Shown piece after piece: positions 7,424 to 45,104 of a DNA stretch of 64,000 nt; within the stretch, counting starts at the first letter, position 1, and the number at the start of each line of letters is the position of its first letter. The notes under the pieces are model-generated. The model worked only from the letters and a program-made list of their open reading frames with translations. It had not been told where the DNA came from and made no database searches. Source of the DNA: Penicillus capitatus (taxonomy: Eukaryota > Plantae > Chlorophyta); NCBI GenBank assembly GCA_965649825.1, contig OZ287701.1, forward strand, positions 609,101 through 673,100, in the 5' to 3' direction. A program made the position numbers and the translations under genes.

Positions 7424-9088
7424 ATGCAATCCTTTCAGCTCATGCGATCGCCGAAATTCACGAGAGCGTCGTATAGAGGAAAACAGCGTGGTCGCGTTCT
7501 CTGTGCAGCCAACCCGTATCGTACGTTTGGACTAAAGTCCGTTTCCGTCATCCGAGACCACCGAGCGACAGTGCCCATGGTTTAGGTCGCTGAACTTGTC
7601 GCCGTCTTTTCAAGCTATCTCCCGTGGACTCAAGTCATTGCAGGAATCGCCATCGAAGCTATGTTATCGCTCGGCCAACAGTGCCTCGTCTTCGCAGACG
7701 CTCGACGCAACGCCAAATCGCTCGAGTGGTCAGCAAGACACCGTGGCACAGAAGGAGAAACTCGGTGTCATGTTGCTTAATCTTGGTGGTCCAGAGACGC
7801 TCGACGACGTCCAGCCTTTTCTCTACAATCTCTTTGCCGACCCAGATATCATTCGACTACCAGAGGCGCTGAGATTTTTGCAGAAGCCTCTGGCCACCGT
7901 CATCTCAATGACGCGTGCCAGCAAGAGTGCTGAGGGATACAAAGCGATTGGCGGCGGATCTCCCTTGAGGCGAATCACAGAAGAACAGGGAGGCGCTCTA
8001 AAACAGGCCTTAAATCGAAAAGGAACTGATGTCGAAGTCTACGTCGCCATGCGATACTGGCATCCCTACACCGAAGAGGCCATGAACCAAGTACGCGTAC
8101 AATGCGATCCAGTGAGAAAAGAGTGAGAAGAGGGATACTGCTGGCTGGTGTAGATTAAAAAAGATGGAATCACGAATCTCGTTGTGCTGCCCCTCTACCC
8201 GCAGTTTTCTATCTCCACTAGCGGCTCCAGTCTACGGTTACTGCAAAATATACTCGAAAACGACCCAGAACTCATCACGCTGAAGCACACGGTATGTCAT
8301 GGCCCTGTTGTCGGATTTCATGATGATCTGTGCAGGTTATACCCTCCTGGTATCAAAGGAAAGGATACGTGAATGCCATGGCGGATATGATTCTGGCGGA
8401 ACTCAATCTCTTCGACAGTCCAGAAGACATCGAAATCTTCTTTTCAGCCCATGGCGTTCCCAAGAGCTACGTCTCTCAAATCGGCGATCCGTACAAAGAA
8501 GAAATGGAAGAATGCGTGTCCCTGATTATGGCCGAGCTCCAGAGACGTCACGTCACAAACCATCACACATTGGCCTATCAGAGTCGCGTCGGTCCTGTGG
8601 AGTGGCTGAAGCCGTACACAGATGATAGTATTCGAGAGCTCGGACGCAAAGGCACGAGCGGAATGCTTGCTGTCCCGATCAGTTTCGTCAGCGAACATAT
8701 CGAAACGCTTGAAGAGATCGATATGGAGTACAAGGAACTGGCCCTTGCCTCCGGCATCGCACAGTGGCGTCGTGTGCCTGCACTGAATACCAACCCTGCT
8801 TTCATCGAAGATCTGGCAGATGCTGTCTTAGAAGCATTGCCTTACGTTGGATCCATGATTGGACATTCCGACTCCCTCGTGCCCATCGGCGAAGTCGATG
8901 CTTTGTTGGATGTCTTCGATCGCGATCGTCCAACGCTGCCGTCGCCAACGGGTATGTGGAAATGGGGGTTCACTGCCAGTGCCGAAATCTGGAATGGAAG
9001 AATCGCCATGGTCGCCGTCCTCGTGATACTGATGTTGGAGACGATGACGGGACGCGGTATTCTCTCAAACCTCTTTACTGCATTCTAA
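7424..9088 (+). CDS. hemH: Plastid ferrochelatase with C-terminal CAB domain (FC2 type)
   Basis: Motifs [48 protein letters not shown] and [11 protein letters not shown] are present. The C-terminus [16 protein letters not shown] is a CAB motif. Splicing gives a transit-peptide-like start [29 protein letters not shown]. Confidence 0.95.
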
Positions 9089-16775: not shown

Positions 16776-19700
16776 GTAGCACGGCAAGCCGCGGCCTGTG
16801 TGTGGAATTGTTGAGTTCATCATGATGGTGTCAGATACAATCGATAGGAAAGCAGATGAATGGGTGCACTTTAGAAAAGGAGTCAGTGGATGAAACGCTG
16901 TTTGCGTTCTCCCACACAGGAATGGATGCGAATGTGACGCGGTCGATAGTCAAAGAAATGCTGAACGGGCAGTGTACTACCTCTCTCTTCTTCTTATCTT
17001 ATCACTATTGTCACCGTTCGATGTACTTGATTGATCTTCGTCAATGGATGCCTCTGACGGTCCGGAAGTTACCAAGTCATTGGAGGTGAAAGTAACGAAG
17101 TCAATGCGTTGGTCCCCAGAACTTCATCTTGTGTCGTAGAGTCCAACTCTGTGTATGTACTGTTCTGCACTTTGCTGGGGGAGCTCCGCTTGTTCTCCTT
17201 GGCGAAACTGGTCAAGACGCTCCTAGAAGGTCGGATAGAGCGGTGGGTACGGGACAAGCGCACGTTGGATATCTCGCTCGGCGTCGTTGTTGGCCAGGGT
17301 GACAAAAACAGTTTGAGAAAAACGGTATTAAACATACGTAAAGCATAAGAGCACAGTGAGTCCTAGACAGCTAGCTTATTCCATCCAAGTAATGTGACAT
17401 GCAAGGCAGATGAGTCATTGCGTATTCAGCACTAGAGGAAAGTTCCCCCTGGCGCTCAAGAGGTCCTTCTGAGAGGACAACGATTTCCCCATTCACCGCC
17501 GCCCGCCCTCTCTCCAACAAGACAGTCCCGTCGCCACAGGAATCTCGGCGACAACTATCATCTGAGAACACTGAATACTGGTCGTTTTCGCATCGATCAA
17601 TAGACGATATCGATCGGCGTTTGGATGATACGTGCATTTTAAACAAATCGTTGATATATCGCGTTATGATAAGGAAACCGTAGACACGACGTATTCGACA
17701 GTCAAATTGTCAAAATCGAACGATCTTTAGTTCGTCAGTACGTGTGTAACGCACTTCGGGCCGAGGACTCAGTGCTTTGCTGTGGCGACGGCGCGACGCG
17801 TGAAACGACACAGAATCGGCGACGAACCTTATGTACAGTGATGTGACATGACACTGCGTCCTGTAGGCTGAGTAGTCATCCTACTCTCTCACCAACTCAT
17901 TACTTAACTGTGACTCTCACTCTGTCACAGCAATCCCCACTGATCTCACTCGAGTCGCATTGAATCTGATGGGACACTCACATAGTAGAGGCGCTCTGCG
18001 CCACAAAAACACATGCCTCAGTCTAATGGGGCCGCGCATGACTCCTCTGCGCTGAACATCCACCGAATCTGGCCGGAAGGCCTACTCATATAGAAAAACC
18101 CAATGCGCGCACCTAAAAAAACACTTCGCGCATCACACCAATCCACAATCGGCAAGAACAAGCTGCAGAACTGTCCGATTTCGAGGCCCCAAAGCCGTGA
18201 GCACTGCTTTGACCACCAGAACCTTGTCTCCTGAGTCGCAGCTGCCAGAAAACGCCGTCGCCGCCGAAAGCGCCGTCGCAGAACGCCTCAACCAAGTTCG
18301 CGCCACTTCACTGTAACACGGGCAACTTCCCACAGAGGACGTCGCTTGAGTTGAGACTTGGTGCAAAGGCATCTCCGGAGACCCGCTATCCAACGCCGAA
18401 GACAGTGCCCCGAACGACTGCCCCGTCGCTGAGAACCGAGAAATCGCATGACGCGCAGATTCAGGTGTAACGCGCATGCATGGAAAGAAGATACGGCCAA
18501 GGACGCCGTATGCGTGGCAACGCATACGACGCCCTCGACCGTAGGAGGAGGCCATGAACGCGAGCAACACGACTTCCGCTGTGCAAAGGTCGCATCAAAC
18601 GCATCACCCAGAGTAAGCGGCCCGCCGCCTCTGGTCGCCAGCGGCCGGAGGTGGCTGGGCGCGCCACAACGTGCTTCGCTCTAGACACATCGGAGCTTCT
18701 TAATCGGCGAGACGAATAATCGAGGGCAAGGTATTCGTCTTTGGGCCACCGACGGAACATTTTCTATTATGTAACTGTGTGCTTATCGGTTGCGCTTTCC
18801 TCAATGTGAACGATGAAGCTTTTTTTTCGTTCGCGAATGTTACCTGGTGCTTCTTCTAACGAAACGACACTCTGGCATTCCAGCCTCTTTCGCATAAAAC
18901 GGAAAGCTGCGTCTCAAGAGAGAACCGCAGTTTAGCCCTTGGAGATGCAATTAGACTGACGATCTGGCGCGCCTTTGATCTTACGGTGGGGCTTTAACGA
19001 CTGGCTGAGCTCGTCGTAAAACCGTCACTGAGATAAAAAGACTTATCCTCCGGTAAGAGATACTCTTTGTCAAGGTATCAAGTGTAAGAAGTAGCATCGA
19101 GTTGTACGGTCGAAGTGACGGTTTAGATTGTTTGGCACTGAAAGCAATTTATGTTCGTCGCATATCCTTTAAAAAAACTACATGCAAGTGCGTGTGTTCT
19201 GCGTTAGTTCGTTCGCCGCGGGAAGACATAAAGGCCGACATCAAGTTGTATGGCCGAACTGTTTGAAGATTTATCCAGACCGTTGTCGCTGCTATGAAGA
19301 TCCCTTGTCAGTTTCTTTTTCTCTCTATGGTCTCACAGATGTCCTCAATCCTGACGCGAACCTCTCTTTGGTTTGCGCGACAAGCAAGGACATGGAAGTT
19401 AGAAGGAGTGAAAAGACTTGTTCGTCTCCGGACCGACTCGTCTTACAGTCGCAGCGGCAGTCTTAAATAAGAAGAGAACAGGCCAACGAAGATAGCAAAG
19501 ACCAAACCGAAGTGCGGAGAGAAGACAACTTAGTTATAACAAACAGCAGATGTTCGCTGTCGCCGGTCGGGTCGGACGAAAAACAACAAATAGCGGAAGT
19601 CTTTACAAACTGTTGGAGCAAGGCAAAGTAACGTTCAGAATGTCCGTTTTATACCCCAGTGGCGATGTGACCTGCCTAGGCAGGTGAGTCATCCTTGCGT

Positions 19701-19944
19701 CAGAACCAAAGAATAGCGCCCCAGGTGACTCAACCTGCACCCCCTCAAAACGTGAACCCATCGAAAACGAGGCAGTCACATCGCCAAGCCAAATCTTGGC
19801 GACATTCGCAACAACATAACAGAGTGTAAACTTAGATAATCGCACATATCAGAGTCTCTTAGTGCGACGAAAGTTTCAAAACGCCTCAACATGCGATTCA
19901 AAGAGAAACCAGGTAAAATACATTAGTAACATTAAATAAACGCT

Positions 19945-22539
19945 TTACATGTCACCAAGACGTTCACGCATTTTGTTTACTAGTTCCGTGTAAAGCAAAG
20001 CTTCATTGTCCATTCCAATTCTTGACAAACAAGCAGCATAATTGCTCATGCATTGGACGGTGTCCGGATGGTCCGCGTCGCCGTAAAGGCGCTCGCACAT
20101 GTCGAGGGCCCTCTTGTACAGCGGCACGGCCTCGTTGTCTCTCCCCGTTCGTCCGAGTCCGATGGCGTAGCTCTTGATGCAGTCGACGGTGTCCGGATGG
20201 TCCGCGTCGCCGTGAAGGCGGTCGCACATGTCGAGGGCCCTCTTGTAGAGCGGCATGGCTTCGTTGATTCTCCCCGTTCGGTCGAGTCCGATGGCGTAGT
20301 TCTTGATGCAATCGACGGTGTCCGGATGGTCCGCGTCGCCGTGAAGGCGCTCGCACATGTCGAGGGCCCTCTTTCTAAACGGCAGGGATTCGTTGTCTCT
20401 CCCCGTTCGTTCGAGTCCGATGGCGTAGCTCTTGATGCACTGGACGGTGTCCGGATGGTCCGCGTCGCCGTGAAGGCGCTCGCACATGTCGAGGGCCCTC
20501 TTGTACAGCGGCACGGCTTCGTTGATTCTCCCCGTTCGGTCGAGTCCGGCGGAATAGCTCTTGATGCACTGGACGGTGTCCGGATGGTCCGCGTCGCCGT
20601 GAAGGCGCGCGCACATGTCGAGGGCCTTCTTGTAGAGCGGAACGGCTTCGTTGTCTCTTCCCGTTCGTTCGAGTCCGACGGCGTAGTTCTTGATGCACTG
20701 GACGGTGTCCGGATGGTCTGCGTCGCCGTGAAGGCGCTCGCACATGTCGAGGGCCTTTTGAGCATGGGTGATCGATTCTTGAAACATGCATATCTCTCTG
20801 TAGGATCGTGTCGTGTGTTGGAGTAACTTTATTTCTACGCCAGTGTCCTGCGAGCTTTCGCAGTGTTTGAGGAGTGTCGACCCGTTTCTTGCGAGCGAGG
20901 ACCACAGTTCTCGGTTCGAACGGTCCGTTCTCCACTCGTCGATGTATCGGCTGATTGAAGCTACTATAGTCTTCACGTGGTCTCCGATCGCGTTCTTTTG
21001 TTGTTCTTCGGATTCTCGAACGTGACTGGAAGCACTGTCGTCCCTCTTTAGGAGAAGGTGTCTCGCTAAAAGTTGCGTCTCGGCGTGGATGTAGATTTGA
21101 TTCGTCTTTGTGTCCCACGCGACGTGAGAGAAGCGCTCAAGGATCCTTATGGAATTCTGCGTTCTTTCCGCGAACTCTCCACCATCAGCTTCGTGCCACT
21201 TGTACATCCACTCGACGGGCACACCATTCGGATCGAGCAGCGCTAGCTTGGCGAGAATGTCGAGCGAACGGGGGCCGAGGTCGTTGGGTTCCTCCGAAAT
21301 CCTCTGCACGCTCCAGTTGAATACGAAGACCATTCCGCTCGCTTCTTCGCCGATTCGCGTCGCTGAGAGCTCTTCTATCGCTTTGGCCTCTCGTCCCGTG
21401 ACTTCGTACCGTAGCAGACGCTGCACCCATTCGGCGGGGCTCGACCTCTCTTCGTCCCGCATCACGGAGAAGAATTGAGCGAGGACCAGCGGGATCCGAG
21501 GCAACAGGTCCATCAAGTCGTCCAGATCGTTCGGTCGCATTGACCTGCCACATTCGAGTCTCTCTGCCAGAATCCGAGCTTCGTCTTCGTCGAACGGTCC
21601 CAGTCGAAGCATGTTGCTCTCCCAGTCTCCGCCTCCAGCCTCCCTCGTCGTGACGATGACATGTCCGCTTGTCGCCGGAACGTACTCGCGAATCAGTTCG
21701 AAATTCGGAGCGTCGTCGAAGACGTAGAAACAGTGAGATCGTCCGAGCTCTTCTCGAACACGTTTGATGAGCTCCGGGGTTTCGGTGTCGGTGCGAACTC
21801 GCAGGTATTCTGCGATTTGCAGGAACGTGGCAGTGAGGGTCTCTCTGGAGCTTGAAGGTATCCAGAACTCGTCGTCGTAGTGGCGCTTTCCCCTGAAAAG
21901 GTCGAACAGCCGTGTCGCGAGCTGAGTCTTCCCGATGCCGCCCGGGCCGACGATCGCCCTGACGACAAGCGACTCGTCGCTCGACTCGAACGCTTCAATC
22001 ATCTCGCTGAGTTGGTCCTTCCTCCCGACAAAGTAGCGAACGATGTAAGGCTCGACCAGACGATGGTCCCTCCTCCGCCGAAACCGGGAGGCAGCCCGGC
22101 GTCCCGGCGAATCGCTGCCGGACGGAGGGTCTCTGTCTCCACCGCCTCTGAGACCAAGATCGCCCACGAAGACGAGTCTCTCCGCGCCGCGAGCCGGATC
22201 GGACAGAACGTGAACGCGATGACGTGCGGCCCCCGGCGGCAGGCGGGCCAGGTCTCTCGTCGCTTCTCCCGGATCGCAGAAGCCCTTGCAGTAGAGCGGG
22301 ACCGTCAAGATTCCGGGAGAACGGTCCCACTCGCTCCAGATTCCTCGCTGCGAACTTCTTTCCCGTCCGAAAAATCTGCACGAGGCCATGCGCCTCGACC
22401 TCCACCTCGCAGATTTCCTCGGAGACTCCCTGAGCAGAGGACTGAAAGCTGTAGCAGGGAGAAGACGTGAGCACCTCTGCGCAGTCGCTTCCGAGAGCCT
22501 GGGAGCGAGACCGTTCTGTCTGACTGAAAGAGGATCCAC
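19945..22539 (-). CDS. NB-ARC/STAND NTPase-TPR protein (NLR-like); the true 5' end probably involves upstream exons toward about 23100
   Basis: 864-aa ORF with FVGRKDQL, Walker A GPGGIGKT, Walker B YVFDDA, sensor-1 VIVTTR, a LPRIPLVL GLPL-like motif and a winged-helix-like region. It ends in six 43-aa TPR units. The NB-ARC-TPR part has no introns. Confidence 0.92.
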   Translation of the reverse strand: MDPLSVRQNGLAPRLSEATAQRCSRLLPATAFSPLLRESPRKSARWRSRRMASCRFFGRERSSQRGIWSEWDRSPGILTVPLYCKGFCDPGEATRDLARLPPGAARHRVHVLSDPARGAERLVFVGDLGLRGGGDRDPPSGSDSPGRRAASRFRRRRDHRLVEPYIVRYFVGRKDQLSEMIEAFESSDESLVVRAIVGPGGIGKTQLATRLFDLFRGKRHYDDEFWIPSSSRETLTATFLQIAEYLRVRTDTETPELIKRVREELGRSHCFYVFDDAPNFELIREYVPATSGHVIVTTREAGGGDWESNMLRLGPFDEDEARILAERLECGRSMRPNDLDDLMDLLPRIPLVLAQFFSVMRDEERSSPAEWVQRLLRYEVTGREAKAIEELSATRIGEEASGMVFVFNWSVQRISEEPNDLGPRSLDILAKLALLDPNGVPVEWMYKWHEADGGEFAERTQNSIRILERFSHVAWDTKTNQIYIHAETQLLARHLLLKRDDSASSHVRESEEQQKNAIGDHVKTIVASISRYIDEWRTDRSNRELWSSLARNGSTLLKHCESSQDTGVEIKLLQHTTRSYREICMFQESITHAQKALDMCERLHGDADHPDTVQCIKNYAVGLERTGRDNEAVPLYKKALDMCARLHGDADHPDTVQCIKSYSAGLDRTGRINEAVPLYKRALDMCERLHGDADHPDTVQCIKSYAIGLERTGRDNESLPFRKRALDMCERLHGDADHPDTVDCIKNYAIGLDRTGRINEAMPLYKRALDMCDRLHGDADHPDTVDCIKSYAIGLGRTGRDNEAVPLYKRALDMCERLYGDADHPDTVQCMSNYAACLSRIGMDNEALLYTELVNKMRERLGDM
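19990..20760 (-). repeat. Coding tandem repeat, 129-bp unit x6 (TPR array)
   Basis: gtccggatggtccgcgtcgccgt recurs with 129-bp periodicity. Units alternate RDNE/RINE. Confidence 0.95.
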
Positions 22540-24229: not shown

Positions 24230-26629
24230 TAGATGGACGTCATCTACGGTCGGCCATGTCGACGTCGACGCCTGTCATTTCGTACCGCAACGACGCTGCT
24301 GTTGGATTCTTGTCTCGGACGCGATCGATTGTATTTCGCTGTGACGTCATCAACGACAGCGGCGTTTCGCGATCATGACGAAGAGTCGAACGCGCGCGCG
24401 GAAGGGGACCAAGGGATTGCCGTTCGACTTCAAACACCTCTTTCAAATGCAGGCGACACACGAAGACGTCCAGGTATCGTCGTTGTGTATGTTCGTTCAC
24501 GTCGCATCCGAATGGAGAGGGCGTCGTCGGATGCTCCAACATCGCGCCGCCGACACTCGCCGACGGCGTCGGCGTTCCTTCGCGTCTCTCCGGGCGTTGA
24601 TGGCGTTGACCGTGGCGTCTTGGTTTTGTCGCGGATCGCCGAACGGTTCTATGCGCTGTAGAGAGACCTGCAGCGAATCGGAGATGCGCTCGAGACGATG
24701 AACGGCCGGGAGGAGCGCCGAAAGAAGACTCGACGCGACGAAGTGTAAGACGACGATGTCGAAAGATGTCACATCATCCGCGGCACATCATGCAGGGGGG
24801 CGAGTCAGAGCAAGTCTCGAGAGCGTGTCGAGGTCGCCACGGACGAAATCGTCGAAGTCGATGTTGCGATGCAGATGAACTGCTTCTGACGGAACGACGA
24901 TCAGGAGGATGTGTGGATGGGGACAGATACAGAGGACGCGCATGGCCTGTGTGCATGCACATAGCTCTGGCGATTGCGATGAGAGATGTGAACGGACGAT
25001 ATGCGTAATCTTCTTCTGTTTTGACTAAAACGGTTGTCCACTGGACGGAATCGCGATGCAGCGGGTGACGCTGATCCTACAACACGGATAACCTCCTCTC
25101 TTGACAGAGCGAGATTCTCGGAGAGAACGACGTCGCGCGGCCGACGTACGGTCCTTGGTCGATACCGAGTCCCCCCGATCTCTCGACATCTGCAGTGTCT
25201 ATACGTGATTCGACGTTTGTTGCCTCTCGCTCTCATAGAATCGTTTATCGAACACCCCGGAACTACCCGCCGTCTCGAAACAGATGCATAGGTGTGTCTC
25301 GAGTACAGTCGAGAAACCACTCACGTGCTTCTCCCATGTCCGTATCTCGAATCGCATTCTCTCGTCTGTCTTGCTGATCAGAACCTCTGATGTCAAGCCG
25401 GCGTCGATGCAGCCAGACGGATATCGTATAATCGAAACGGATCGCGTCTAGATCGGTTTAACGACAGCGGAGGCTTTCCGGACGAGGTCCAGGCGAATCG
25501 TGCGACGCTCGTGAGTTGGAACGTGTCGTCTATGCAACGCGTAACGTAACAGAACCTCCTGTTATCGCGATCAGGTATTTCGTGCATGTCCCATTGGATT
25601 TTTGTCGTTATAGGATGGCAGACTGCCTTTTGGCCTCTGTTCGTAAAATCTGTCTTACTGTAAACGCAGAATGTCTTCAATGAGAGAGTGACGTCACAGT
25701 CGATTTGGCCGACAGGCCGCTCACGGATCGTGTCCCGAAGACCTCACTTCCAAATCAAGAACCTCAATGTGCAATGGCCGTACAATTACTGTGCTCTTTG
25801 CAGGAAAGACAGATGCCAGCGATAAGCGTGATGTCGGTTTGACTGCAGCTCAAAGAAGCGCAGTCGCCGGGAAAGCGACACGACAAGACGATCGGGAAGG
25901 AGACGAGATCACACGCGCGGTTGCATCGACGGTTTCGCAGTTTCAGCGTGGCATGCATGTCTCTACCAACATGCACACAGCTAACGGAAAGGTCTCCCCT
26001 TCAATAGACGCATGCAATCCTGCATGAGACACGGCGTTATCATCCGAATCCGAACAATATCGGAACGTCGATGGACAGTTTTTATCATTATCGAAATCGA
26101 ACGTTCTCCTTGCAGAGATGTAGACCGATTAGTGGCTGGATAAGCACCTATCTCGTGGATTTATCGTGCGTCGATTGCGATGGCGTTCCGAGGCAGAAAA
26201 CAGCGACAGTCTAGGAAGCTCTCTCATTTGTTTACAAATCTGTTTGGATGCAGACAACCCAATCAGCAGTTCTCTTACGAATCCGATCCTTCCAGACTAG
26301 ACTACCGAGAAAGAGATTTGCAAATCGAGAGCTACTGTATGTTTGTATTGATGCAAATGCACCGAAAACTCCTCATTTGATGAGGATCTGTAGAAGAATG
26401 TTTAGAGAGTTAAGGAGTTCGCCTGGACTTGTAAGTAAGAAAAGAAGCAGACCATGGATGTCTCAAAAACCCTCTACCAAGAATGGCAGATGCGGCGCAT
26501 CCACAGTCACACAACCTGCCCGAACAGATCTACGGACATCGTGTCCCCTCGCTGTGACAGGCATCTTGAAGAACAAAAAACAGAATGGCACTAAAGGGAT
26601 AAAAAACTGCTAGAATTAGAGCAGTCGAT

Positions 26630-29600
26630 TCAAGGGCTCAACAAGTCTTCCAGCTTGGAACGGACGTCCTCGGGACATGAGGTGCGAGGTTCTGTGCAAA
26701 CGAGATCCAAAGGTATGTTTCCGGAATCTGTGGTGCTCAACTTAGATGCTCCAGCATCGACGAGAACCTAACAACGATATCAGCGAGAACAGAGAAGGGC
26801 AGAACTCACTTTCGCACACTTCAGGTAACCACCACGCGCTGCGATATGAAGCGCTGTCCATCCTTCCTCGTCAACAGTGTCGACATTCGCGCCATGATCC
26901 AAAAGACTCTAAGAACAGGTAAGGGACCTCTAGTTAGGCCAGTGCAATAACGCATCTAATGCTGTTCACTTTACTAAGCTCGTCATGGTCATAAAGGGCG
27001 GCGTAGTGAAGTGGCGTCATTCCGTCTTCGTCGATTAAGTTAACATTAGCCTTGCCGTCCAGAAGAGCCTGAAACATGAGATTAAGTTCACAGGGAGGGG
27101 AAGAGGGTTCGTTACTCACCGTGGCGATCTCTTTCAAGCCATCCCGTGCGGCATAGTGCAGCGGTGTCCATCCATCTTCATCGACGGCATCGACATTCGC
27201 ACTGCTATTCAAGAGAGCCTTCAGACACAGAAGTGATCGCGCTAGAAGCTTAAACATGTTCATCGCTCACCGTGACGATCGCCGTCTGTCTAAAACGCAC
27301 AGCGTAATGCAGCGGTGTCCATCCGTCTTCATCAGCGGCATCGACATTCGCTCCGCCAGTAAGAAGAATCTAAACGCATAGAAAAAGGATCGATCGATCG
27401 ATCGAAGAACGCGAACGCGTTTGATGCTTACTTTGGCGATATCGGCGGTTCCATCGCGCACAGCGAAGTGAAGCGGTGTCCATCCGTCTTCATCAGCGGC
27501 GTTGACATTGGCCTTGCCGTCTACTAGAATCTGTGATATGCAACGACTGTTTAGACAGAAAGAGCGATCGCGTTCGATAGGCACTTTTGCGATTTCGATG
27601 CGCTTGTAACGCACGGCGTAGTGTAGAGGCGTCCATCCGTCCTTTTCCATCGCATCGGCATTCGCCCTGAGGTCGAGAAGGGACTAAGAACACATGTCGC
27701 GTCAACCAGAGATTGAGCAATTGATCGATTATCTGCAAACCGTAACGATCTTCAGATATCCAAAGCGCACAGCGATGTGAAGAGGCGTCCGTCCGTCATC
27801 GTCGGCCACATCGATTTTCAGGCCTTCGTTTACCAGAATCTATAAAAGCACGACTACCGACAGGCGAGAACGATCCGATACTTACGGCTTCCATCTCAGC
27901 GATGAACTCATAACGCACGGCGTAGTGCAATGGCGTCCATCCGTCTTCATCGGCGACGTTGACATCGGCGCTGCTGCTTAGCAGAACCTAAAGGCGTCCA
28001 CCGATCATGCCGCGATCGAAAGAAACTTTCGGTGCTCACCGCGATGAGATCGACGTGTCTGTCACGGACGGCGTAGTGCAACGGTCTCCATCCGTTTTCG
28101 TCGGCGGCATCGACATCCGCTTTACGCTCGATAAGAGCCTGGAGTCCAGCAATCGATCAAAGGCGAGCGAAAAGAAGTCCGTGTTTACTCTGGTGATGTT
28201 GATGTGTCCATAACGCACGGCAAGATGAAGTGGCGTCCAACCGACTCTCTCGATGACGTCGACTTTCGCCTTGTTGTCGAGCAGCACCTGCGACGAAGAA
28301 CGTCGATCCGAGATCGAAAACGTAATCGATAATTACGATGACGATGTCGAGATGCCCACCGCGTGCGGCATAATGCAGCGGCGTCAATCCATCTTTTTCC
28401 ACGACGTTTACAACCGCATTGCGCGTCATCAACGTCTAAACATGCATGCCGGATCGAGCAATCGATCACGAATACGACAGATGCTTACTTTGACGACCTC
28501 GACGCGATTGCGATGCACAGCGTAGTGAAGCGCCGTCCATCCATCACTCAACGCAATATTCACATTTGCATTCTTGTTAATAAGAGCCTAAGAGACAACG
28601 CATAGCGTCATATCAATGCAGGAAGCAGTAGGTAAGCTTACAGTCACAATCTCTGTATAGCCCTGCTTTGTTGCATAATGAAGCGCCGTCCAGCCGTTTT
28701 TGTTGATGGCGTCGACCTCCGCCCCTTTCGCCAAGAGTTCCTATTGATTCGACATGCACTTTGGGCAACCTTCAGTAGAAATCACCTTTGCGATAGCCAC
28801 CTGTCTGTTGACGGTGGCTATGTACAATGCCGTCTCTCCATGGCTTGTCCTCAGTTTTAAGTCTGCCCCGTAAGCGATCAATTTCTGCGAGAAGTTTTCG
28901 TGCAGAAAAAAACAACGGCAACGACAAGGTGTACCTGAATAACAGCGAGATGGCCTTGTTGGGCAGCAATGTGCAGTGGGCAGTTGCCAAGGTGATCGAC
29001 GATGTTCGGCTTAACCTTATAACGAATAAGGACCTATGGCAGCCACCGTGTCCAGAAACCGTGGTGTACAGCAACAGAAGATACGTCAATGACATCTAGG
29101 TTGCCATCCAACGCTGCGCGATGCAGTGGCGATCTTCCTTCCTCATCAACTGCCGAGATATTTGCCCCTTTTCGGATCAGCGCCTAAGTCAACAGATCGA
29201 TCGATCGCCTTCGTCGTCTCGTCGACGATCGACGCACCTCCACCACTTCGACGCTTCCTGCTTGTGCTGCCTTGTGCAAAGCCGACTCTCCCGTTTTGTC
29301 CACTGCACTTGTCTTTGCACCGTTCTCTAAGAGCCACTGGCGGCGCACACGTCAGAGTAGATAGGGATGCCAGCTTCACTCACATTCACCGCTTCTGTAT
29401 CGCCATTTCGTGCTGAGACGAGAAGAGCTGTCCATCCTTTGTCCTTCTCCTCCAGGGGACCGCCACCAGAGAGCAACTAGTCCATGATGCACGTCTGTAC
29501 GGCCGAGATCACGAGACGATCGGTACGTACCTGCATGATCTTGAGTTGTTTGCTGTCTGCTGCAACAAGCAACGGTTTAAAGCCTTCCGCATCGGCAGTT

Positions 29601-32600
29601 TCTTTATTCGCCCCTTTATCGATGAGAACCTAAAAACGCACGCGTCTTCAAACCGAAGATCCCAAGCAACGTGTTCACTTTGGCGAACTCAAACTGTCCA
29701 GCTGCAGAGGCAATCACCAGTGGTGTCTGTCCTTCTTCGTCCTGTACATCTGTACTCGCCTTATTATCAATGAGCACCTGCAGACATCGCAGATGACATC
29801 TCTGATCAGCAGTCTCGCGTCATGACCTTCGCGGCATCTGTATATCCGCTCTGTGCCGCGATGTGCAACGCCGTCCATCCATCTTCTCGCACGGCGTCGA
29901 CTTTGGCGCCACGTGAAATCAATTCCTGTCAGCCGCCATTGCCGAACGTGAAAAACAACACAGATGGTATGCCTTTATGATATTATCTCTTTCGACGAGC
30001 ACCGCCCAATGCAGAGGCGTCTGTCCTTGTCGATCTGCAGCGTCAATGTCTGCTCCGCCTTCGATGAGTTTCTAAACGCTTTCCGATTCGAAACGCGCGT
30101 CTTCCGATTAAAATGCGCACCTTCACGACTTCCAGTTTTCCAGTGAAAGTTGCGACGTGCAACGGCGTCTGTCCCTCTTCGTCTCGTGCTTCTTTGTTTA
30201 CTCCATTGGCAATGAGGATCTGCGCAGATGCATTTCAAGGCATTGATATGCAAAGCAGTGCCTGTCACCTCAACGATGGCGAGATGCCCGAGTTGCGCTG
30301 CGACGTGCAACGCTGTCCATCCATCGTCTCGGACGGCTTCGATGTCCGCGCCACCGTCGATCAATGGCTACTCACGATCGCATTCGACATTGAAGCGAAA
30401 TCATGCAGTCCTACCTTCACGATACTCGTTTTTCCATACAACACCGCCACATGCAGAGCTGTCCGTTCGTGGCTATCCAGGACGTTCAAGTCCACTTTCG
30501 CGTCGATGAATGCCTAAACAGTTCTCAATCGAGAGAAGACGGTGCGTATGTGTGTCTACCTGTACAAGTTCCAGATTTCCAACCTTCGCTGCAGCATGCA
30601 GCGCTGTCTCGCCATCTTTGTTCTGCACGTTCAGATCCACTCCACTTGCAATCAACGCCTGCAACATCTCTCATCTTCCGCACAAAGGCGGCGTAACGGT
30701 ATGACCTGCACAACTTCTGTCGATCCGATATCTGCGGCCATATGCAATGCCGTCCATCCATCTTTTCGAACAGCATTGACATTGGCACCCAACTCAATCA
30801 ACGACTACACACACATTCGATTTACTGCTGAACTGGAGGTTAAGATATGTGTGCCTGCACGGCGCCCTTTTCTCCTTGAATCACTGCCAGATGCAGAGGC
30901 GTCTGTCCCTTGCGATCAACGGCTTCTATGGTCGCATTAGCCTCGATAAGCGCCTGTCAATGACATGATGTCTATCTGTCGTGCAGGTCAGTGATCAGAG
31001 TGACGTCTTGCCTTGATGACTTCGGCATTTCCCGATTTGGCGGCTTTGTGCAACGGGGTTTTCTTACCCTTGCTTTGAGAATCGACGTCCGCTCCCTTTC
31101 CCAAAAGAACCTATGACTCACTCACATTCAGCATCACAGAACCGAAATCTAAAGTGCATCGTGTTTGGTACCTTGACGACTTTAAGTCGTCCGTTTTCCG
31201 CCGCCAGACTCAGAGGCGTCTCTTTCTTAATGCTGGTCGCATCCACGTCGACCCCAAATTTCAGGAGAATCTAGAATCGCACATATCGTCTTATTTGCAG
31301 CCTGTGTAAAGCGAAAGCGAAGCTGCTGATGCGGTCGATGACGCAACCACATATCCATGACTGCCCACTCTCAATACCAGATCGGATCGCGCCCCGATTG
31401 CTCACCTTAGCCACAGCTGTCGATCCGAATATCGCAGCGATGTGAAGCGGCGTCAAATGGTGATCATTCTTTCTGCTGATATCTCCGTTTCGCTCTTTAA
31501 GAAGCTACAAACACAAACCACAAGTGTCTTCTCATGGCGGCATTGATGGACTGGATCGGAGACGCACCTCGAGACAGTCCAAGGCATTAAAAGCCGCAGC
31601 CCAATGGATAAGCGTCGAGCCTTTGGCCAGAGATGGGGAACTGTTTTCTTCGTCCTCGTGATACGTTGCGTTGGGCGAGAGGCCTTCGTTCAGAATCTTA
31701 GTCGCTTTCCAGTTCTCGTCTTTTTCGAGAGCTTTCAGAATTGCCTGTCAACACGACGACAATGATCCGCGCATATATCGCGACGCTCTTACCAGGAGTT
31801 CCTGCCATCGAGGTGTCTTCTTGTTCACCTGGATCGGCGCAGTGACTTTCGATTCCTTCTCCTCTTCCAGGCTCTTTGACACCTAAACCACAAAACGCAG
31901 ATCAGTCTCGTATAACGAAGGGGACAGGCAGTGCGAAACGCGTTCGCGTGGATTTCGCGATAAAGCCCATCGCAAGCGTTTCGATGAGAAATGTGTGAAC
32001 TCACGTCGTTTTCGATCTTGATCGTCTCTTCGATCCAATCCCAGAAGGCAGACACACGGGTATAGACGATCGGAGAGTACCCATCGCATACATCCGAGCT
32101 GAACGATGTGATACCGATGATGACATCCTGTTTCGAATTGCCCTGCGGAAGAGTGATCTCCGGTTTGTACGGGATAAACAAAGGTCCTCCCGAATCGCCT
32201 GTCGATAACAGAAACGCACAGTTTTTTCTCTTCGTCTGGCATCCGATCGCGTTCACGACTTACCGCGACACGTATCGCTACCGATCGAGCCGATACAGAT
32301 CATGTGCTTTTTCAGAGTGGCATTGAGCGATCTCTGACACGAATTGGCGGACAAGACCGGGAGATCCTCAGTCGATTGCAGCACACTTGCCGTGACGTTC
32401 TTCTCTGTCGAACCCCATCCGGCCATCGCGAGACGATCCCCATAGCGCAGTTGGACACCGTCTTTGTCGAAACTCACTCCTCCGGCCACGGCTTTTCTGT
32501 CTAATCGCACGAGCCCCACATCGAAACCGTTCTTCACATCGCTGTTCCATTTTGGATGCCAATACGCTCTCTTCGATCGATACAACTACAATCGCACAGC

Positions 32601-33266
32601 TCACGTGACGATCGATGGCTGATCGATCGATCAGTCATCTTCGCATTCTTACGCTTCGAGGATCGTTCGAATCGACTTCGTAGATTCCGCAACGAACAGT
32701 CGCGAAATGCCCGAGACCAGTTTGTTTGTTGTTCCATAGACAGTGCGCAGCTGTCAAGACCCATTGATCATCGATGAGAAATCCACCGCAGAAATGATCA
32801 TCGGTTCCCGGTTTTCTCAGGCTGCACATGAAAGGGAACCTCTCTCTCGGAGCCGGATTGCCATCCTGGGCAAAGAGAACTGCCATACGTCGTTCGCGTT
32901 GCTAGATGCGTACCATGACTCTCGATTCGGCATAGTTGCTTTGCGCACCGATGTCGTTCTTTTCTACAAAACGAGGCGGCTGCTTTGCGATCGACGCAAC
33001 GTAACGACGTTACCCGGTGGCACTTCTTCCTGTTTCTAGAAGAAACGCACACACCATGCTTCATTAATGCATGGCGGCGGCGGAATGCATACCATGGATT
33101 CGTGTTGCACGAAGGCATTTGGTAAAACGTGAGCGCCGTTTGCTGAAAGGGAAGAGGGTAAGCTCGGTTTAGACGATCGTCTGCGCTACGGACCGTAAAT
33201 GCCTGATGATGGATGTCTACCGTAGATGAAAGACCAGAAGAGCAGACAAAGAACCGTGCGCCTCAT
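26630..33266 (-). CDS. Predicted secreted trypsin-family (S1A) serine protease fused to about 32 ankyrin repeats; about 40 exons
   Basis: Signal-like [18 protein letters not shown], then activation-like SR-VMDG. The catalytic triad is intact: [23 protein letters not shown]. Intron 31883-32004 (GTGAGT...TTTAG) joins IEND to VSKSLEEEK in phase 0. Ankyrin exons follow, ending [26 protein letters not shown]. Confidence 0.85.
26810..31504 (-). repeat. Array of about 31 ankyrin repeats, one per phase-0 exon (almost all 99 nt)
   Basis: Examples are exons 31406-31504 ([33 protein letters not shown]) and 26810-26908 ([33 protein letters not shown]). Each is bounded by AG and GT or GC at the same position in the repeat. 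One exon reads as 93 nt and one as 102 nt. Confidence 0.9.
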
Positions 33267-38264: not shown

Positions 38265-39871
38265 TCAGGACTTGAGCATGGTATCCACTTCCTCCGTCGT
38301 AATCTCAGAATAGAAGAGCTTCATGTCAGGGGCGATTGTCTGCGCCACTTTTGATTTCTTGAACTTGGCGTACTGGCTATCAGTAAACACTATATAGACT
38401 AGGGTTCCGTTGTCTTTTCCAGGAGCAGGTGCAAATACTGTCTGAATGCCGGTGAGGGGCACTAGGTTTATGAGCTTTGCCATTCTTGGAGGTCCTTTGC
38501 CAAAATCGACATCGTTCCACGGTATACGAGACACGTTGGACACGAAGGACACGACTGATGTCGTCGCCGGAGGCATCGTTCCTGTAAAAACAGTGTAGTA
38601 TGTTGTCAAAAATGTCTGAGCCTGGAGCTCAGGTTGCTGTCTATAATCTGTGATGCCTTTCCGCGCCATCTTGGCAAAAGCCACAAAGATGTCAGACAGA
38701 GATCTGTTTTCGATTTCCAGTTCGTGTGTGGCCAAGGATATGGTCACCGAACCGTTGCCGACATAATTCTCTGGAAAAATGCGCACTCCATTCTTGAGAC
38801 ACTCGGCGGCGAACTCAGCCGAAGTATCCGTTACATCGAGCGAGCCATCCTCACTCATCCTTCCACTCACCTCATACTTAAGCAACAGCACAAAAGCAAA
38901 GAGCAAGTCATTGATAGAGAGACATTCTCCTTCAGCGAGAAAGGGTCTCGCAATGGATTTCATTTTGTTCAGGGCCTCCTACACAGCACATTGAAGAACA
39001 GCTTGAGATCGCATTTGTGTAAGTAACCTTGCTAAAGTACAGGGCCTCCTGTACGCAGCCTTCTTCGGGATATTGATCGGAGACAATCTTTTCTTTGTTT
39101 TGACTGGCGGCGCGTGGCAGATCAGCAATCTCTTCTCCCAGAAACGTGTAATGCTTAGCCAATTGATCCGGCCACAAACAAGAGCGATCGTGATTGCGAT
39201 TCGGAACTTCTAGGCCTCTGTAAGCGCGGCCTAGATCGACCACCATTTCGATACAGCGCTGAGCGTCGAGCAAAACGTGAGAAATCGTAGTTGTCAACGA
39301 ACAGCCGTCAGCAAAGTGTATCAAGCGAAACTTCGTCATCGGAGCTTCTCCTCTGCACAACCAACTCCATGACTCTAGGAGAGAATTCCGAGTGGCCATT
39401 ACATGATCATTTTATCACGGTCGATGGTGTCCATCGTGAAAGGCATATCGGGAACTACCGGAAAATCTGCTGTCCTGCTTTGGAGTTTGCTATGTTTCGT
39501 AATCGCTGTCGATATCGACATGTCTGACTTCAGTTCCTCAAACGGAATCCAACAAGAGTCATCTTTCTCTGGGCAAATCTACGCGAAAATCTCTCTATGG
39601 CTTTGTTGGCTTTTATGAATACCTCGACCACGAAACGCAGATTTTCGTGTGGGCAGAATCTTCCGCAGAGACAAGGATATTTGCGTAAGAGTACTTTCAG
39701 CGCTGCGATGAGTCGATCGGCGTCGATGTCAGCATCAAAGAACAGTGGCCACGTGATATAGCCTCTTTGAACCATGCTGCAAAAATCGATTGGAGCCAGC
39801 AGCAACGTTTCTTTCGAAAGTCCTTCGGGCACAACCCTTTCTTCCCGCAAATATTCAAATAACTTCGTCAT
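38265..39871 (-). CDS. BAHD-family acyl-CoA acyltransferase, copy A
   Basis: LLRKYPCLCGR, HxxxD motif (HVLLD), SINDLLFAFV, and the DFGWG-like DVDFGKG. Confidence 0.85.
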
Positions 39872-40089: not shown

Positions 40090-41710
40090 TTATTTTCCTT
40101 CTATCATGGCCTCTATGTCGTCTGCCGTAAAATCAGAATAAAGGTATTTGACACCAGGTGCACACGCTTTAATGATTTTTGAGTTTCTGAAACGGGAAGC
40201 GGATCTCTCGGGTACCGAAAACTGTATGATGATCCCCTGGTCATCGCCCGGAGCATTGCTGATGACAACAAACAGACCGGTAAAGGGAATCGGAAAAGCG
40301 TGGACAATTTTGGGAGTTCCTTGACCAAAATCTACTGAAGCTATCGGCATCTTGGACACATTCGTCGTCACCACTCTCGCACTCAATGTATCCTGTGGAA
40401 TGACTCCCTCATGCACGATCATGTAGAAGGCCAGTAATGACTGCGCTGCAATCAGAGGCTGTGTCTGGAAGGCGGTGAGGGTTCTTCGCATGGTAAGTGC
40501 CAACTGGGAAAGAATTTCCAGAAAGGATTTGTCTTTGACGTCAGCTTCGCTGACAGGGAAAGAAGGAATCACGATCGCATTCCCACAGAATTCTTCAGGA
40601 ACAATCTGCACGCCGTTCCTGCGGAGTTCGATAGCGGCCGCTCCTATTGTGTCGGACACAAGCGACCAAAAAGTGTCCTCGGTGGGCTCTTCTTCCGCCA
40701 TGAGTTCGCATTTGAGCATCCACGCGAAACCAACGATCAGATCGTTAGTCGAGACAAATTCCCCCTCGGGCAACAATGGCCGAACAGCCTCTTTCATGCC
40801 ATTCAAGACGTCCTGGTACACGAGCTGCGAATCAGAATAGAGAATGCGATCCATAAACGGACCTTGGAAAAGTAGAGCGCCTCCAAGTCACACATCTCTC
40901 CCGGATAAGCATGCAAGATGACCTCCTCTTTAGGCGTAGCTGTTTTTCGTGGCATGTTGGCCACTTCTTCGCCCAGAAAGGTGTAGTGTTTCGCCAGTTG
41001 ATTTGGCCAAAAGGCAGAACGATCAAAAGAGCGTTCCGGAATGTCTTCCCCTTTATAGATGCGACTGAGATCGCGGTACATTTCGATATACCGCTGACCA
41101 TCCATCAGAAGGTGTGAAGCGGTGATGGTCACGGCACAGCCATTGGAAAAGTGTGTCAAGCGAACGCTGACGATCGGAGTCTCTCCTCTGCAGGCAACAT
41201 TCGTTGTCAGTCGTGTGCGCTTTCCTTTCGGAGAATCACTTGATCAGAGCCTCGGGATTGAAGTGCTCCATAATGAAAGACGGTTCAGGGTAGGACGGAT
41301 AATCGGCAGATGCATTCTTGATCTGACTGTGTTCCATATATGCAGTGGCAATCGTCATATCCGCTCTCAGTTCAGAGAAAGGGATGCCATAGGTGACGGT
41401 GCTGTGTGTCCCCACCTAAAGATCTCGTTTTAGAACACGCATGAATGGAATCCAAGCTTGCCTCGATGATATAGCGTGTGTCTTCGTGAGGGCGGACCCG
41501 TCCACAGAGAAACGGATATTTGACACACATCGTTCGCAGGGCTTCCACGAGGCGACTCGCATCGATGTCGTAGTCGAAGAAAAACGGCCACCTGATTTGG
41601 AGGGTGTCCATGAAGCTGTGAACATCGAGTGGAGAGAGATGGAGCGTCCGAGGCGAGAAACCGTCAGGAGTAACATACTCTTTTCGCACAATCTCAAAGG
41701 GCGTCGACAT
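40090..41710 (-). CDS. BAHD-family acyl-CoA acyltransferase, copy B (tandem paralog)
   Basis: KYPFLCGR, HLLMDG, STNDLIVGFAW, VDFGQG. Intron positions match copy A. Confidence 0.85.
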
Positions 41711-42872
41711 TGTGAAGAATCGAACGCGAAAGAAAAATGTCCCATCTCATGCTTCATGCAGTTGTCTAACCGTCTGACAAAAACACCGAACACAAAAATC
41801 ATCCTCCTTTCTATTGAATCCAAGATGTCGCCGTTGAAGAAGCGAACGGTGGCGAGAACACCTCCTCGAGAAATCAGCTGACGGGTGGGTGCTCTTGCCT
41901 AGTCATGTTCCACGGCATGCTTCGCGCTGAAGTCTTCTTGCTTTTGATGACAGTCGAAAGGTGAAAGGTTGAATCGATATGGTCGTTCATAAGATCCTCA
42001 CAATCGACAGCATTCTCACTCGAGCTTTCACATCACTGGACCCGCACTCGGTTTACCTCTTTATGCGCTGTGTATTTCAATGGTACCCCACCTGAAGGAA
42101 TCGACCATGGGCTATCTTACCTTTTCTGTCGAAAGCAAATCTCTACTTTAGCCTATGCGCGTGGGACAGTGCCATCTGACATCTCGTCCATTTGCGCAAT
42201 CGGGTGAGGGTCCGTCAAAGGGAGTGCGCGTAGGAGTAGTGACAGAGGTATGTTGTCGATATCTGACGTAAGGAATTATCGCGTTGCCACGTATTTCGAA
42301 CCTTGCGTCTGTGTGAGAAGTCTCACTCTTTTGTGTCTGGCATCCATTTTTTGAACTGCCATGGGTGAAACGGTTTGGAAGCTGACGCTGGATTCGACCG
42401 AAGGTATGAAGACGTTGACGTACTGTCGCATCAACAAACGCCCATTCGCTACACACAACGCGCTTCATTATCCGTGATTTGTTTGTCCAGTATTGTCCAC
42501 AATGAGTTTCGGCGGTGGCTTTCATTCAAGTAAGCAAGAAACCGCTGTCGCTTCTCCTTCAAAACAAACACGGTGTGTTACGTAGATAGTCAATCGACAT
42601 TCAATACGCCACAGGTACGAATACACTTTCTGCGCACATGGTGTAAGCAGTTGCAATATATAGACGGGTGGAGGGTTCGGAATGGGCAGCACTTTTGGCT
42701 CCTCGCAGGTATCAAGACGCGTAGAGAATCGCATCTTGGATCAAGTTGTGTTTGTAGGGGCCAGGGGGCTTCGGACAAACATCGACTTCTGCGTTCTTCA
42801 ATTCGACACCCGCCTCTCCAAACTCAGGAGTACGTTTGCGTCGAGAATCGGTCGGATCTGAGCTGATCGGTG

Positions 42873-45104
42873 ATGTTTTCTCAGGGGAGTGTCTTCGGTG
42901 GCAATACCACTTCTCAGCTCTTTGGCTCATTTGGACAGCAGAATAGAGGATTTGGAAGCAGTTCCGCCGTAGCGCCCTTTGGAGGCAGTGGCTCCACATT
43001 CGCAATGCAGACAGGACCAACAGGCATAGCACCAGACGGATCTCAAGGAACCCAGGGACGTGCTTTTGAACGGACTCCTGAGACATCAGATTCTGGATCG
43101 AGTGGAGCCAAAGCATACTTGATGACGATCGTGGCCATGAAAGACTTCGTTGACTGTCAGCCAGAGATGCTGAGAGCTGCCGACTATAAGAAGGGCCACA
43201 GACGCAGCAGCGGCCAAGTTCAGGCAATGGGTTCGGCATCCGTCGGCGTCTTCGGCGGAGGAGGCTTCGGTGGAAATACAACGCCATCTGGAGGCTCTTC
43301 CCCTTTTGGCGGTGGCGGATTTCGTGGCTCCACAGGGTTTGGAGTTGGCGGCTCTGCTGGAATCTTTGGACAGTCCACACCTCAGCCATCCGGCGGGATT
43401 ACACCATCTTTTGGCCAATCTGCCAGTTCCTTTGGTCAACCAGCCAGCAGTGGTGGATTTGGACCTAGTTTCGGCATGTCCAGCAGTTCTATTTTCGGAG
43501 GATCGTCTGCATTCGGGCAGCAATCAAATCCTTCTGTATTTGGATCTCAGCAGCAACCAAAGCCATCTATCTTCGGAAATCAGCCCACAGCGACCTTCGG
43601 ATCGTCAGCGTTTGCGCAGAGAGCATCAAGTGGCGGAGGCCTTTTTGGTCAGCCATCATCAACCTCTGTCTTCAGTTCATCAGCACCCGCACCGTTTGGA
43701 GGAGGGACTTTTGGCAGCAGTGGAGGCTTATTTGCCCAGTCGAGCTCTGCTGGACTGTTTGGCGTTCAAAGTTCTGGAGGATTCGGTTGCAAAGCTGCCT
43801 CGTCTGGCAGCCTCTTCGGCAGTTTCTCCTCGGGGACATCTATCTTTGGCCAACAATCATCTGGCGGTTTTTTTGGTAGACCTGGCCAGTCTACTTCTTT
43901 CGCAAGTTCTTCCTCCTTGTTTCAAATTCCGTCTCAGTCGCAACCTCTCTTCGGTCCTCAGCAGCCACAAGTGCCTGGAGGAGTCGCCTCTGGTCCAATG
44001 CCTTCTTCACAGCAGCAGCCATTTGGCCAGCGACTGGGATATTTTGTGACCAATGCGCCGAAATCTGCATCCGATGTCCAGCCAAGTGGTTTGCCTGATT
44101 GGAACAACATGTCCTCCAGTATGGCACAGATCTTGCAACAGAATCTCTCGGCGGCACAGGTGAGCTGTTATTTCTTTGCCCCCTGCTTTTTTGTCTGAGC
44201 CATCCATCTATGCAGAGCAAACCTGGCAACATGTTATCCGAATGGCCTCTCTCCGGCAAAAGGAACCTACGATACATTCCTGTCCAAGTCCATTTCCCTG
44301 AGGAAGAAACGGAGAGCACAAAAGGGACGCAGAGCAAGTTCCAGATGGACTGGACATCGTTCTCTCTGGCCAGACCTATGCATACCAGTTTGGCCGACGA
44401 GATCCAATCGGCGATTGAGGAATACGGAAGGAATGTGCCTCACTCCTCCTCGCAGGATGCCGCTTGTGAAGTCACACAGCTTCCTGCCAGCGGATCACAG
44501 GTGTTTCCAGAGGCCTCTGCTCCTCCCGAGGACAACACAAGTCAGAGTCGTGCATCACGGCTGAACCTTTTGCCAGTCTTGGAGAATTCTGAATACTATA
44601 TCCGTCCCAGTATGAACGAATTGGAGCAGTTGATCCAACAAAAGGGGGAAGATGCACTCAAAGCAGTTCCCAACGTCGAGATTGGACGCTCAGATTTCGG
44701 AGAAGTGACTTTTCTGTCGCCAGTCAATCTACAAAAGCTCGACATCAATGCGACGCTGCGGATCGAACGCGGCAAAGTCGAACCTGGTCCGAAAAGCAAC
44801 TGTTTGAAGGGTATTCCTGTCGCCGTGACGCTCTTCAAGGTGACAAGCATCCTCGATCCAGAACTTGCCCTTCTCAAGAGGGTGATGATGTGACAGGTGT
44901 TTAGCAGAGACAAAGGCATGAGAGGATTTCTGGAAGGGGAGCGCGATCTGAAGCTCGAGATCGAGAGGCTGAGAAAGTACACAACGAAATTTAATGGTGA
45001 ATTTGTGTCCTATGATCGTCACGGCACGTGGAAGTTCAAAGTAAACTTCCTCATTCCTCCCACACTCAAAGCAGTTATTCTTTCAGGTGGAGACACTGAA
45101 ATAG
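42873..45104 (+). CDS. NUP98: Nucleoporin Nup98-like (FG repeats, GLEBS-like motif, C-terminal autoproteolytic-type domain), no Nup96 part
   Basis: Dense FG repeats, GLEBS-like GTQGRAF...LMTIVAMKDFVDCQPEMLRAADY, and the APD-like YYIRPSMNEL...VEIGRSDFGEVTF...GEFVSYDRHGTWKFKV. Confidence 0.88.

Follow-up and report, generated by a model that had tools for sequence, protein, structure and literature searches.

A 64,000-nucleotide (nt) stretch of the genome of the green alga Penicillus capitatus (GenBank assembly GCA_965649825.1, contig OZ287701.1, positions 609,101 to 673,100 of the forward strand; hereafter the window, numbered from its first letter) carries a minus-strand gene in which a chymotrypsin-fold (S1A) serine protease domain is followed by a long ankyrin array. 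The coding region extends from 33266 to 26630 in 41 exons and specifies 1,455 amino acids (aa). We propose, at a probability of about 60%, that its product is a zymogen of the secretory pathway that would carry a solenoid of 33 ankyrin repeats permanently at its C-terminus as a conserved docking platform. Taken singly, the two halves are textbook domains; their combination and topology are not. Pfam finds Trypsin (PF00089) and ankyrin families in the 1,455-aa product and nothing else, and judged from its sequence the gene belongs to an uncharacterised chlorophyte family with the putative layout of signal peptide, S1A protease, ankyrin array and Cys-pair cap. Provided that the signal peptide is functional, an ankyrin solenoid of 33 repeats would fold and act outside the cytosol while being covalently tied to a chymotrypsin-fold protease.

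Gene structure and conservation of the fusion

Raw three-frame translation showed a trypsin-like domain spread across three exons and, beyond it, about 30 ankyrin units spaced every ~149 nt, in surroundings that are eukaryotic and rich in introns. The gene model (26630–33266, minus strand, 1,455 codons plus stop) is an explicit splice model with hand-checked junctions, supported by projection onto an orthologue. A model from dynamic programming that rewarded open reading frame (ORF) length was dropped since it ran through many introns, and was replaced by a chain of phase-0 exons of about 99 nt. At the N-terminus, brute-force splice enumeration left 64,686 open paths and gave no decision; the path was chosen by donor and acceptor matrices built from 36 introns of the ankyrin region and was then confirmed by the orthologue. 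The introns measure 42–135 nt, with GT donors in 37 of 40 and GC donors in the other three. These three GC-AG introns (29971–31011; donors at 31011, 30854 and 29972) are a high share for one gene; the orthologue retains each of these GC donors and has one more. In chlorophytes TGTAA marks polyadenylation, and its first occurrence outside exons on the coding strand (26232–26236), about 390 nt past the stop, is a candidate poly(A) signal. No second trypsin or ankyrin gene turned up when the remainder of the window was scanned.

A homologue search led to the orthologue: the middle protease exon matched an ORF fragment at 89% identity, carried on two long contigs of one ENA assembly (loci L001 and L002). 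Both loci align collinearly with 12.4 kb of the window at 83% nucleotide identity, a flanking ALG6/8-like gene included, and projecting the 41 exons onto them gives an intact ORF with the same 1,455 codons, in which 40 of 40 donors and 40 of 40 acceptors are retained. Insertions and deletions (indels) between the two genes are confined to introns (41 of 41 events); the 4,368 bases of the exons, 66% of the span, contain none (P ~8e-20). Identity is 87% in exons versus 77% in introns, and substitutions at the three codon positions stand at 128:92:346. The ratio of nonsynonymous to synonymous substitution rates (dN/dS) is about 0.17 for the whole gene; the protease alone gives 0.12, the ankyrin array 0.16 and the propeptide 0.77, and dS is about 0.4–0.45 for the protease and ankyrin domains. 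Because the orthologue keeps the splice sites and the frame, indels are intronic only and dN/dS is low, we regard the predicted fusion of protease and ankyrin array into a single gene as established short of complementary DNA (cDNA).

The initial annotation had linked the two halves by a phase-0 intron leading into a charged linker, and this reading holds. The intron (32004–31883) is 122 nt long with GT..AG borders, and the linker exon behind it (31793–31882; 90 nt, aa 300–329) is charged and has no ATG; once the intron is spliced, neither a stop nor an ATG-started frame lies between the protease and the repeats. It is barely credible that a secreted-protease gene with its end near 32005 was wrongly joined here to an independent ankyrin gene. 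The linking intron does exceed most introns of the gene (42–78 nt), but another intron is even longer at 135 nt, and no ATG-started frame runs into the linker or the first ankyrin exons. The length of the linking intron is not divisible by 3, and the intron is non-coding because it carries 4-nt and 2-nt indels relative to the orthologue; its identity to the orthologue is 80%, with 91% and 87% in the flanking exons. The linker exon, by comparison, has zero indels and both splice sites kept. No TGTAA occurs in the linking intron or in any other intron of the gene. The same fusion, with a homologous linker, is found in the Caulerpa model g8885.t1, the fusion is present in other gene models, and one contig has it as an uninterrupted ORF. 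With 80 splice sites and a 1,455-codon frame kept in the orthologue and indels only in introns, the earlier claim of one protease-ankyrin gene stands.

The protease domain and the route of the chain

The Trypsin profile matches aa 57–290 with an E-value of 5.5e-42 (144.5 bits against a cut-off of 20.6) over profile positions 3–220 of 220. Residue numbers and register were taken from an alignment to chymotrypsinogen A. Protease exon A (32653–32865) encodes His57 (32745–32743), Cys42 and Cys58, and additional cysteines at positions 31 and 68; exon B (32264–32585) encodes Asp102 (32522–32520), Cys168 and Cys182, Asp189 (32276–32274) and Cys191; exon C (32005–32198) encodes Asp194, Ser195 (32193–32191), Ser216, Cys220, Ile226 and the C-terminal helix. 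The triad His57/Asp102/Ser195 is in register (H97, D149 and S237 of the model) and identical in the orthologue. The sequence SR/VMDG aligns with S14-R15/I16-V17-N18-G19 of chymotrypsinogen, which places the putative activation bond at R54/V55 (32922–32917; SR/IVDG in the orthologue), and Asp194 is present. Exons 2–4 (33142–33093, 33035–33014 and 32963–32914) encode the predicted activation peptide N17–R54, a weakly constrained propeptide of 38 aa without Cys. The profile match, the triad, the activation bond with its Asp194 and the core-disulfide cysteines together assign the predicted domain to the S1A family. The SR-VMDG site, the triad and Asp189 had all been called by the initial annotation, as had a signal-like N-terminus, and Pfam and the chymotrypsinogen A alignment confirm the first three in place on the minus strand.

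Chymotrypsinogen and pancreatic elastase zymogens (PDB 1acb_E and 8b04_A) are of the same fold family (E ~1e-24), and the best match among solved structures is an elastase by a small margin. The algal protein has in common with chymotrypsinogen the activation bond between Arg and Ile or Val, the triad, Asp194 and the disulfide pairs 42-58, 168-182 and 191-220, all in register, the bonds being deduced from the conserved cysteines. Unlike chymotrypsinogen, it lacks the pairs 1-122 and 136-201, has the extra Cys31 and Cys68, presents a pocket of Asp189/Ser216/Ile226 and carries a C-terminal extension of 1,150 aa. Positions 31 and 68 lie on neighbouring strands of the S1A fold. The nearest relatives of the protease are S1 proteins of Bryopsis, Caulerpa and Ostreobium, and an intron directly before DSGGP is common to the Bryopsis gene BSKO_04697.

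The initial annotation had assigned trypsin specificity from the Asp at the S1 position. That residue is there (D231 of the model), but positions 216 and 226, where glycines are expected beside it, hold Ser and Ile; the alignment has no gap from anchor Cys220 to anchor Tyr228, and the orthologue has an identical pocket. Since residue 226 is beta-branched, the pocket should be narrower, and cleavage after Arg or Lys is doubtful because of the Ser216/Ile226 pocket; judged from these residues, plain trypsin specificity is doubtful. Self-activation at Arg54 is likewise unlikely because the pocket probably refuses Arg.

Exon 1 (33221–33266) opens with the first ATG after an in-frame stop and encodes MRR, a 13-residue hydrophobic core and I-Y-A/N, in an n/h/c layout that fits the -3/-1 rule. 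It contains the most hydrophobic 12-aa window of the protein, and the orthologue keeps the segment; signal-like N-termini occur in all five full-length family members inspected. Hydropathy analysis found no other hydrophobic span in the protein and no membrane span between protease and array. Cys191 and Cys220 are only ever lost together, as in Caulerpa g8885.t1 and the paralogue L004, and the two cap cysteines behind the array are invariant. Because of these signal-like N-termini, the eight Cys at disulfide positions, the joint loss of 191 and 220 and the invariant cap cysteines, the sequence argues for synthesis of the entire chain, with its ankyrin array, in the secretory pathway. A secreted or luminal zymogen with extracytosolic ankyrins had been the earlier suggestion, and its predicted hallmarks (signal-like N-termini, Arg-Val bond, Asp194, disulfide Cys pairs and cap Cys) are present. 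NxS/T sequons, put forward then in both parts of the protein, do exist, but the eight seen compare with 6.9 expected from composition, only four are kept in the orthologue, and we rejected them as evidence of secretion.

It is improbable that the protein is cytosolic and its N-terminus no working signal peptide, in which case protease and array might act as effector and sensor in a conflict system of NLR type. Most ankyrin arrays are cytosolic, the nearest solved arrays are those of ankyrin-1/2, NOMPC and TRPA1, NB-ARC and NACHT genes are neighbours, and in fungal NLRs enzymatic N-terminal domains occur together with ANK, TPR or WD40 repeats (PMC4986451). However, Pfam detects no NTPase family, whereas NLR/STAND proteins have a central NB-ARC or NACHT; and the n/h/c layout in all five members, the eight Cys at S1A disulfide positions with 191/220 lost only jointly, the invariant cap pair and the conserved zymogen activation site also stand against a cytosolic location.

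The ankyrin array, its family and possible roles

The array consists of 33 repeat exons, all in phase 0, 29 of them exactly 99 nt; the long array proposed initially is there, with 33 repeats in place of about 32. ANK0 (31568–31744) comprises an N-terminal capping helix and a first repeat with a 26-aa insertion, and its motif DxNW..KIL..GL.PNAT...STL.H.AA is common to Caulerpa g8885.t1 and paralogue L004. ANK1–ANK31 occupy 31 exons of one repeat each (26810–31504; 29 of 99 nt, one of 93 and one of 102). The last exon (26630–26767) holds ANK32, the Cys-pair cap, the C-terminal helix KLEDLLSP and the stop, so that the protein ends 22 residues past the last repeat. The cap VCTEPRTSC, whose Cys pair the initial annotation had correctly singled out, contains C1434 (26698–26696) and C1441 (26677–26675); the orthologue conserves both, and both are invariant in 8 of 8 aligned family members. 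On the array, Pfam returns Ank_2 with E = 0 and Ank with E = 1.4e-241 over 27 stretches. One repeat per symmetric phase-0 exon is a very clean example of a layout that allows an array to grow or shrink without a break of frame. Tandem Repeats Finder reported no 150-nt period in the array, which is explained by repeat DNA identity of at most 72%. The array is old, because the repeats are on average only 37% identical to each other (maximum 64%). Relative to the orthologue, no repeat has been gained or lost. The net charge of the array is about -38, which is strongly acidic.

Long uninterrupted arrays of 33-residue repeats with the TPLH motif are likewise found in ankyrins, NOMPC and TRPA1 (PDB 7tw3, 5vkq and 6v9v), which are cytosolic, have 16–29 repeats and are joined to ZU5, UPA and death domains or to channels. 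The algal array differs in its 33 repeats, the signal-like N-terminus, the protease fusion and the Cys-pair cap, and the ZU5-UPA-death supermodule that follows the 24-repeat array of ANK1-3 is missing. Latrotoxins (PDB 9go9, 7ptx and 7pty), secreted proteins with about 20 ankyrin repeats, are also among the best matches in the structural database. They are pore-forming and have no protease domain; the algal protein shows no homology to them beyond the repeats and no hint of toxin activity.

The same architecture was found in three gene models of Bryopsis sp. KO-2023 (BSKO_04697, 04699 and 04794) and two of Caulerpa lentillifera (g5122.t1 and g8885.t1), all annotated as hypothetical proteins, in one contig from Logan SRR28002515 and in two paralogues of a related alga. 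Caulerpa g8885.t1 can be aligned in unbroken order from the protease across the linker into the first repeats (32% identity over 501 aa, E 2e-66), and the linker exon in the window aligns with its linker. The Logan contig, 2,582 nt and possibly a transcript, carries the same layout in an uninterrupted 566-codon ORF. Family membership is recognised by domain order, homologous linker and first repeat, the two-Cys cap and a C-terminal L..LL helix. Repeat numbers range from 5 to 33; the other members have 5 to about 14, and the array described here is by far the longest among the members found.

Both paralogues are in ENA ERZ26696514. L004 (10000–12500) has eight repeats, and its active-site exon reads GDLGGPL, so that Ser195 is changed to Leu; Cys191 and Cys220 are gone, whereas the activation site, the linker, eight ankyrin exons and the Cys cap are retained. 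On its predicted sequence, L004 is a catalytically dead family member. L005 (10000–13300 and 14844–18530) has about 14 ankyrin exons and a D189/G216/G226 pocket, and Gly216/Gly226 are present in g8885.t1 also. Another trypsin gene lies at 2724–3564 of the L005 locus, and a 1,228-aa NACHT+HEAT-repeat gene sits 1.7 kb from L005 on the opposite strand.

This spread is a lower bound, as the search covered the 150 best representatives for an exon-B query, among which five long proteins carry ankyrin repeats. Word-indexed protein searches appear to list matches up to about 1.75 times the query length, and a lack of long Trypsin+Ank matches is not a sign of rarity there; a 590-aa protein in the query alignment, for example, was absent from the match list, and a single-domain query would miss long relatives with several domains. 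The Ostreobium quekettii model CAD7695718.1 (P0504; 1,348 aa) was not used as evidence of fusion since a second annotation stops at 353 aa. In that model the order is signal peptide, Trypsin, one hydrophobic span, NB-ARC, LRR and ankyrin; the fusion is unverified, and the layout, if real, would be that of a membrane NLR-like protein with an outward-facing protease.

We found no paper on the architecture, and the Bryopsis, Halimeda and Ostreobium genome papers mention no ankyrin-fused forms, only a general S1 expansion in Ostreobium. The notion of an undescribed system survives in this sense; the architecture is not unique, however, and the family recurs in Bryopsis and Caulerpa genomes. Ostreobium has 159–189 S1 peptidase genes, about 40% of them with a signal peptide, which were read as digestive, and an ankyrin-fused subfamily is unmentioned there (10.1101/2020.07.21.211367). 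The secreted S1 peptidases of Bryopsidales are green-algal S1A enzymes as well, and mostly stand alone at 280–410 aa. The S1 peptidase expansions of siphonous green algae need not all consist of digestive enzymes.

How might such a protein work? We envisage that the N-terminal hydrophobic segment would bring the whole chain into the endoplasmic reticulum, where the protease could acquire four disulfides and the ankyrin cap one, and that the protein would be secreted or stored as a zymogen. Cleavage after Arg54 would free Val55 to pair with Asp194 and thereby shape the active site. An outside activator is likely because the enzyme's own Asp189/Ser216/Ile226 pocket probably refuses Arg; the activating protease could be a paralogue with the canonical Asp189/Gly216/Gly226 pocket, such as the one present in L005. 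As the array is C-terminal to the protease, it would remain attached after activation, and the acidic solenoid could be a fixed docking platform of considerable size, anchoring the protease at a partner or recruiting substrates to it.

Several points weigh against this scheme. The signal-like N-termini were judged by hydropathy and the -3/-1 rule alone, and the disulfides are deduced from conserved cysteines. P1 specificity is not readable from three pocket residues. The suggested role of the array is drawn by analogy from general ankyrin biology. Ankyrin repeats of the secretory pathway are uncommon, and a cytosolic location is conceivable.

The initial annotation had instead cast the array as a sensor that sets activation, and we tend away from that reading. 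A wound- or microbe-derived ligand of the array would control activation or targeting of the protease in an algal wound or immune response, which we rate as rather unlikely. The family includes active and catalytically dead members (GDLGGPL in L004), and arthropod immune protease cascades also mix active and dead members. STAND NTPase genes are near (NB-ARC+TPR 4 kb downstream in the window; NACHT+HEAT 1.7 kb from L005), although such adjacency could be chance in STAND-rich genomes. The family occurs in the giant-celled Bryopsidales, which are known for rapid wound responses (10.1101/2023.11.22.568388). This wound and immune context of Bryopsidales biology, active/dead mix and nearby STAND genes is circumstantial. 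Unlike fast-evolving recognition modules, the array is under purifying selection and shows no repeat turnover (dN/dS 0.16 and 0 indels, at dS ~0.45), and interspecies differences in it single out no small set of hypervariable positions in the comparison with the orthologue. The array is also C-terminal, and the Ostreobium model that joins a trypsin domain to NB-ARC-LRR-ANK, which would speak for a sensor, is contradicted by its 353-aa second annotation. Purifying selection on the array thus looks like a better fit to a putative fixed docking scaffold than to a diversifying sensor.

An exported effector that acts in or on another organism (a host, symbiotic partner, grazer or competitor) through ankyrin binding seems quite improbable. 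The signal-like N-terminus next to a eukaryote-type protein-binding array would suit such a role, and bacterial ankyrin effectors provide models, as do latrotoxins, secreted proteins with long arrays of ankyrin repeats that rank among the nearest solved structures. On the other hand, Pfam finds no translocation domain or other module, the free-living Bryopsis and Caulerpa also have the family, and strong purifying selection runs counter to an arms race.

The docking-platform reading can be set beside the modular S1A proteases of animals, namely CLIP-domain proteases with their inactive homologues, MASP/C1r and Limulus factor C, which are secreted zymogens with protein-binding modules. By analogy, the algal family would likewise combine a zymogen and a binding module on one chain, include active and dead members, and probably depend on another protease for activation. 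CLIP- and MASP-type modules are N-terminal, are held by an interchain disulfide via Cys122 after activation and use no ankyrin solenoid, whereas the algal protein carries its module at the C-terminus, lacks Cys122 and has a Cys-free propeptide of 38 aa. A wider scheme, which we put forward as no better than a long-odds conjecture, is an extracellular or lumenal algal cascade in which ankyrin-tailed S1A zymogens, Arg-specific activators and dead cofactors would be brought together on a surface by their solenoids, for instance to plug wounds or in defence. If true, the scheme would give algae an equivalent of the clotting and CLIP cascades of animals and would provide the first extracellular ankyrin scaffolds in a eukaryote's own secretory pathway. 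The family forms a natural series in which the repeat number varies from 5 to 33, the protease is active or dead and the S1 pocket is open or occluded, and Bryopsis offers extruded-cytoplasm assays and RNA interference (PMC12961179), which makes function testable.

Other genes in the window

The NB-ARC+TPR gene downstream of the protease-ankyrin gene is an 864-codon ORF on the same strand (19945–22539, minus strand) with an NB-ARC NTPase followed by TPR_10/TPR_12 repeats, in the manner of an NLR-like STAND protein. It lies in a GC-rich stretch (0.58–0.59 versus about 0.50), and the orthologous locus L001 has only a short NB-ARC+TPR-related piece (19196–19717). Near-identical TPR_12 units at 100–636 on the plus strand (RALDMCERLHGDADHPDTVECIKSYA...) resemble those of the NB-ARC gene, and this run is probably the end of a second NB-ARC-type gene that leaves the window at its start.

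An apparently intact retrotransposon of the type without long terminal repeats (non-LTR) lies at 51270–56296 on the minus strand, with a 1,086-codon ORF encoding endonuclease and reverse transcriptase, and its upstream ORF of 582 codons has a CCHC-like knuckle and no Pfam match. At 7596–9088 (plus strand) a plastid-type ferrochelatase with a C-terminal light-harvesting-like helix is encoded; its best named relatives, about 70% identical, are from core chlorophytes. A Nup98-like nucleoporin gene is marked by an FG/GLFG-rich ORF with a Nup98-96 autopeptidase S59 domain behind it (42870–44893, plus strand). Two adjacent minus-strand ORFs (38265–38963 and 40090–40854), which have the look of a tandem pair, each correspond to the C-terminal half of the BAHD-type Transferase family PF02458. 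Between 61217 and 63956 on the minus strand, a DEAD/ResIII N-terminal part and a Helicase_C domain lie in separate ORFs of one intron-containing helicase gene.

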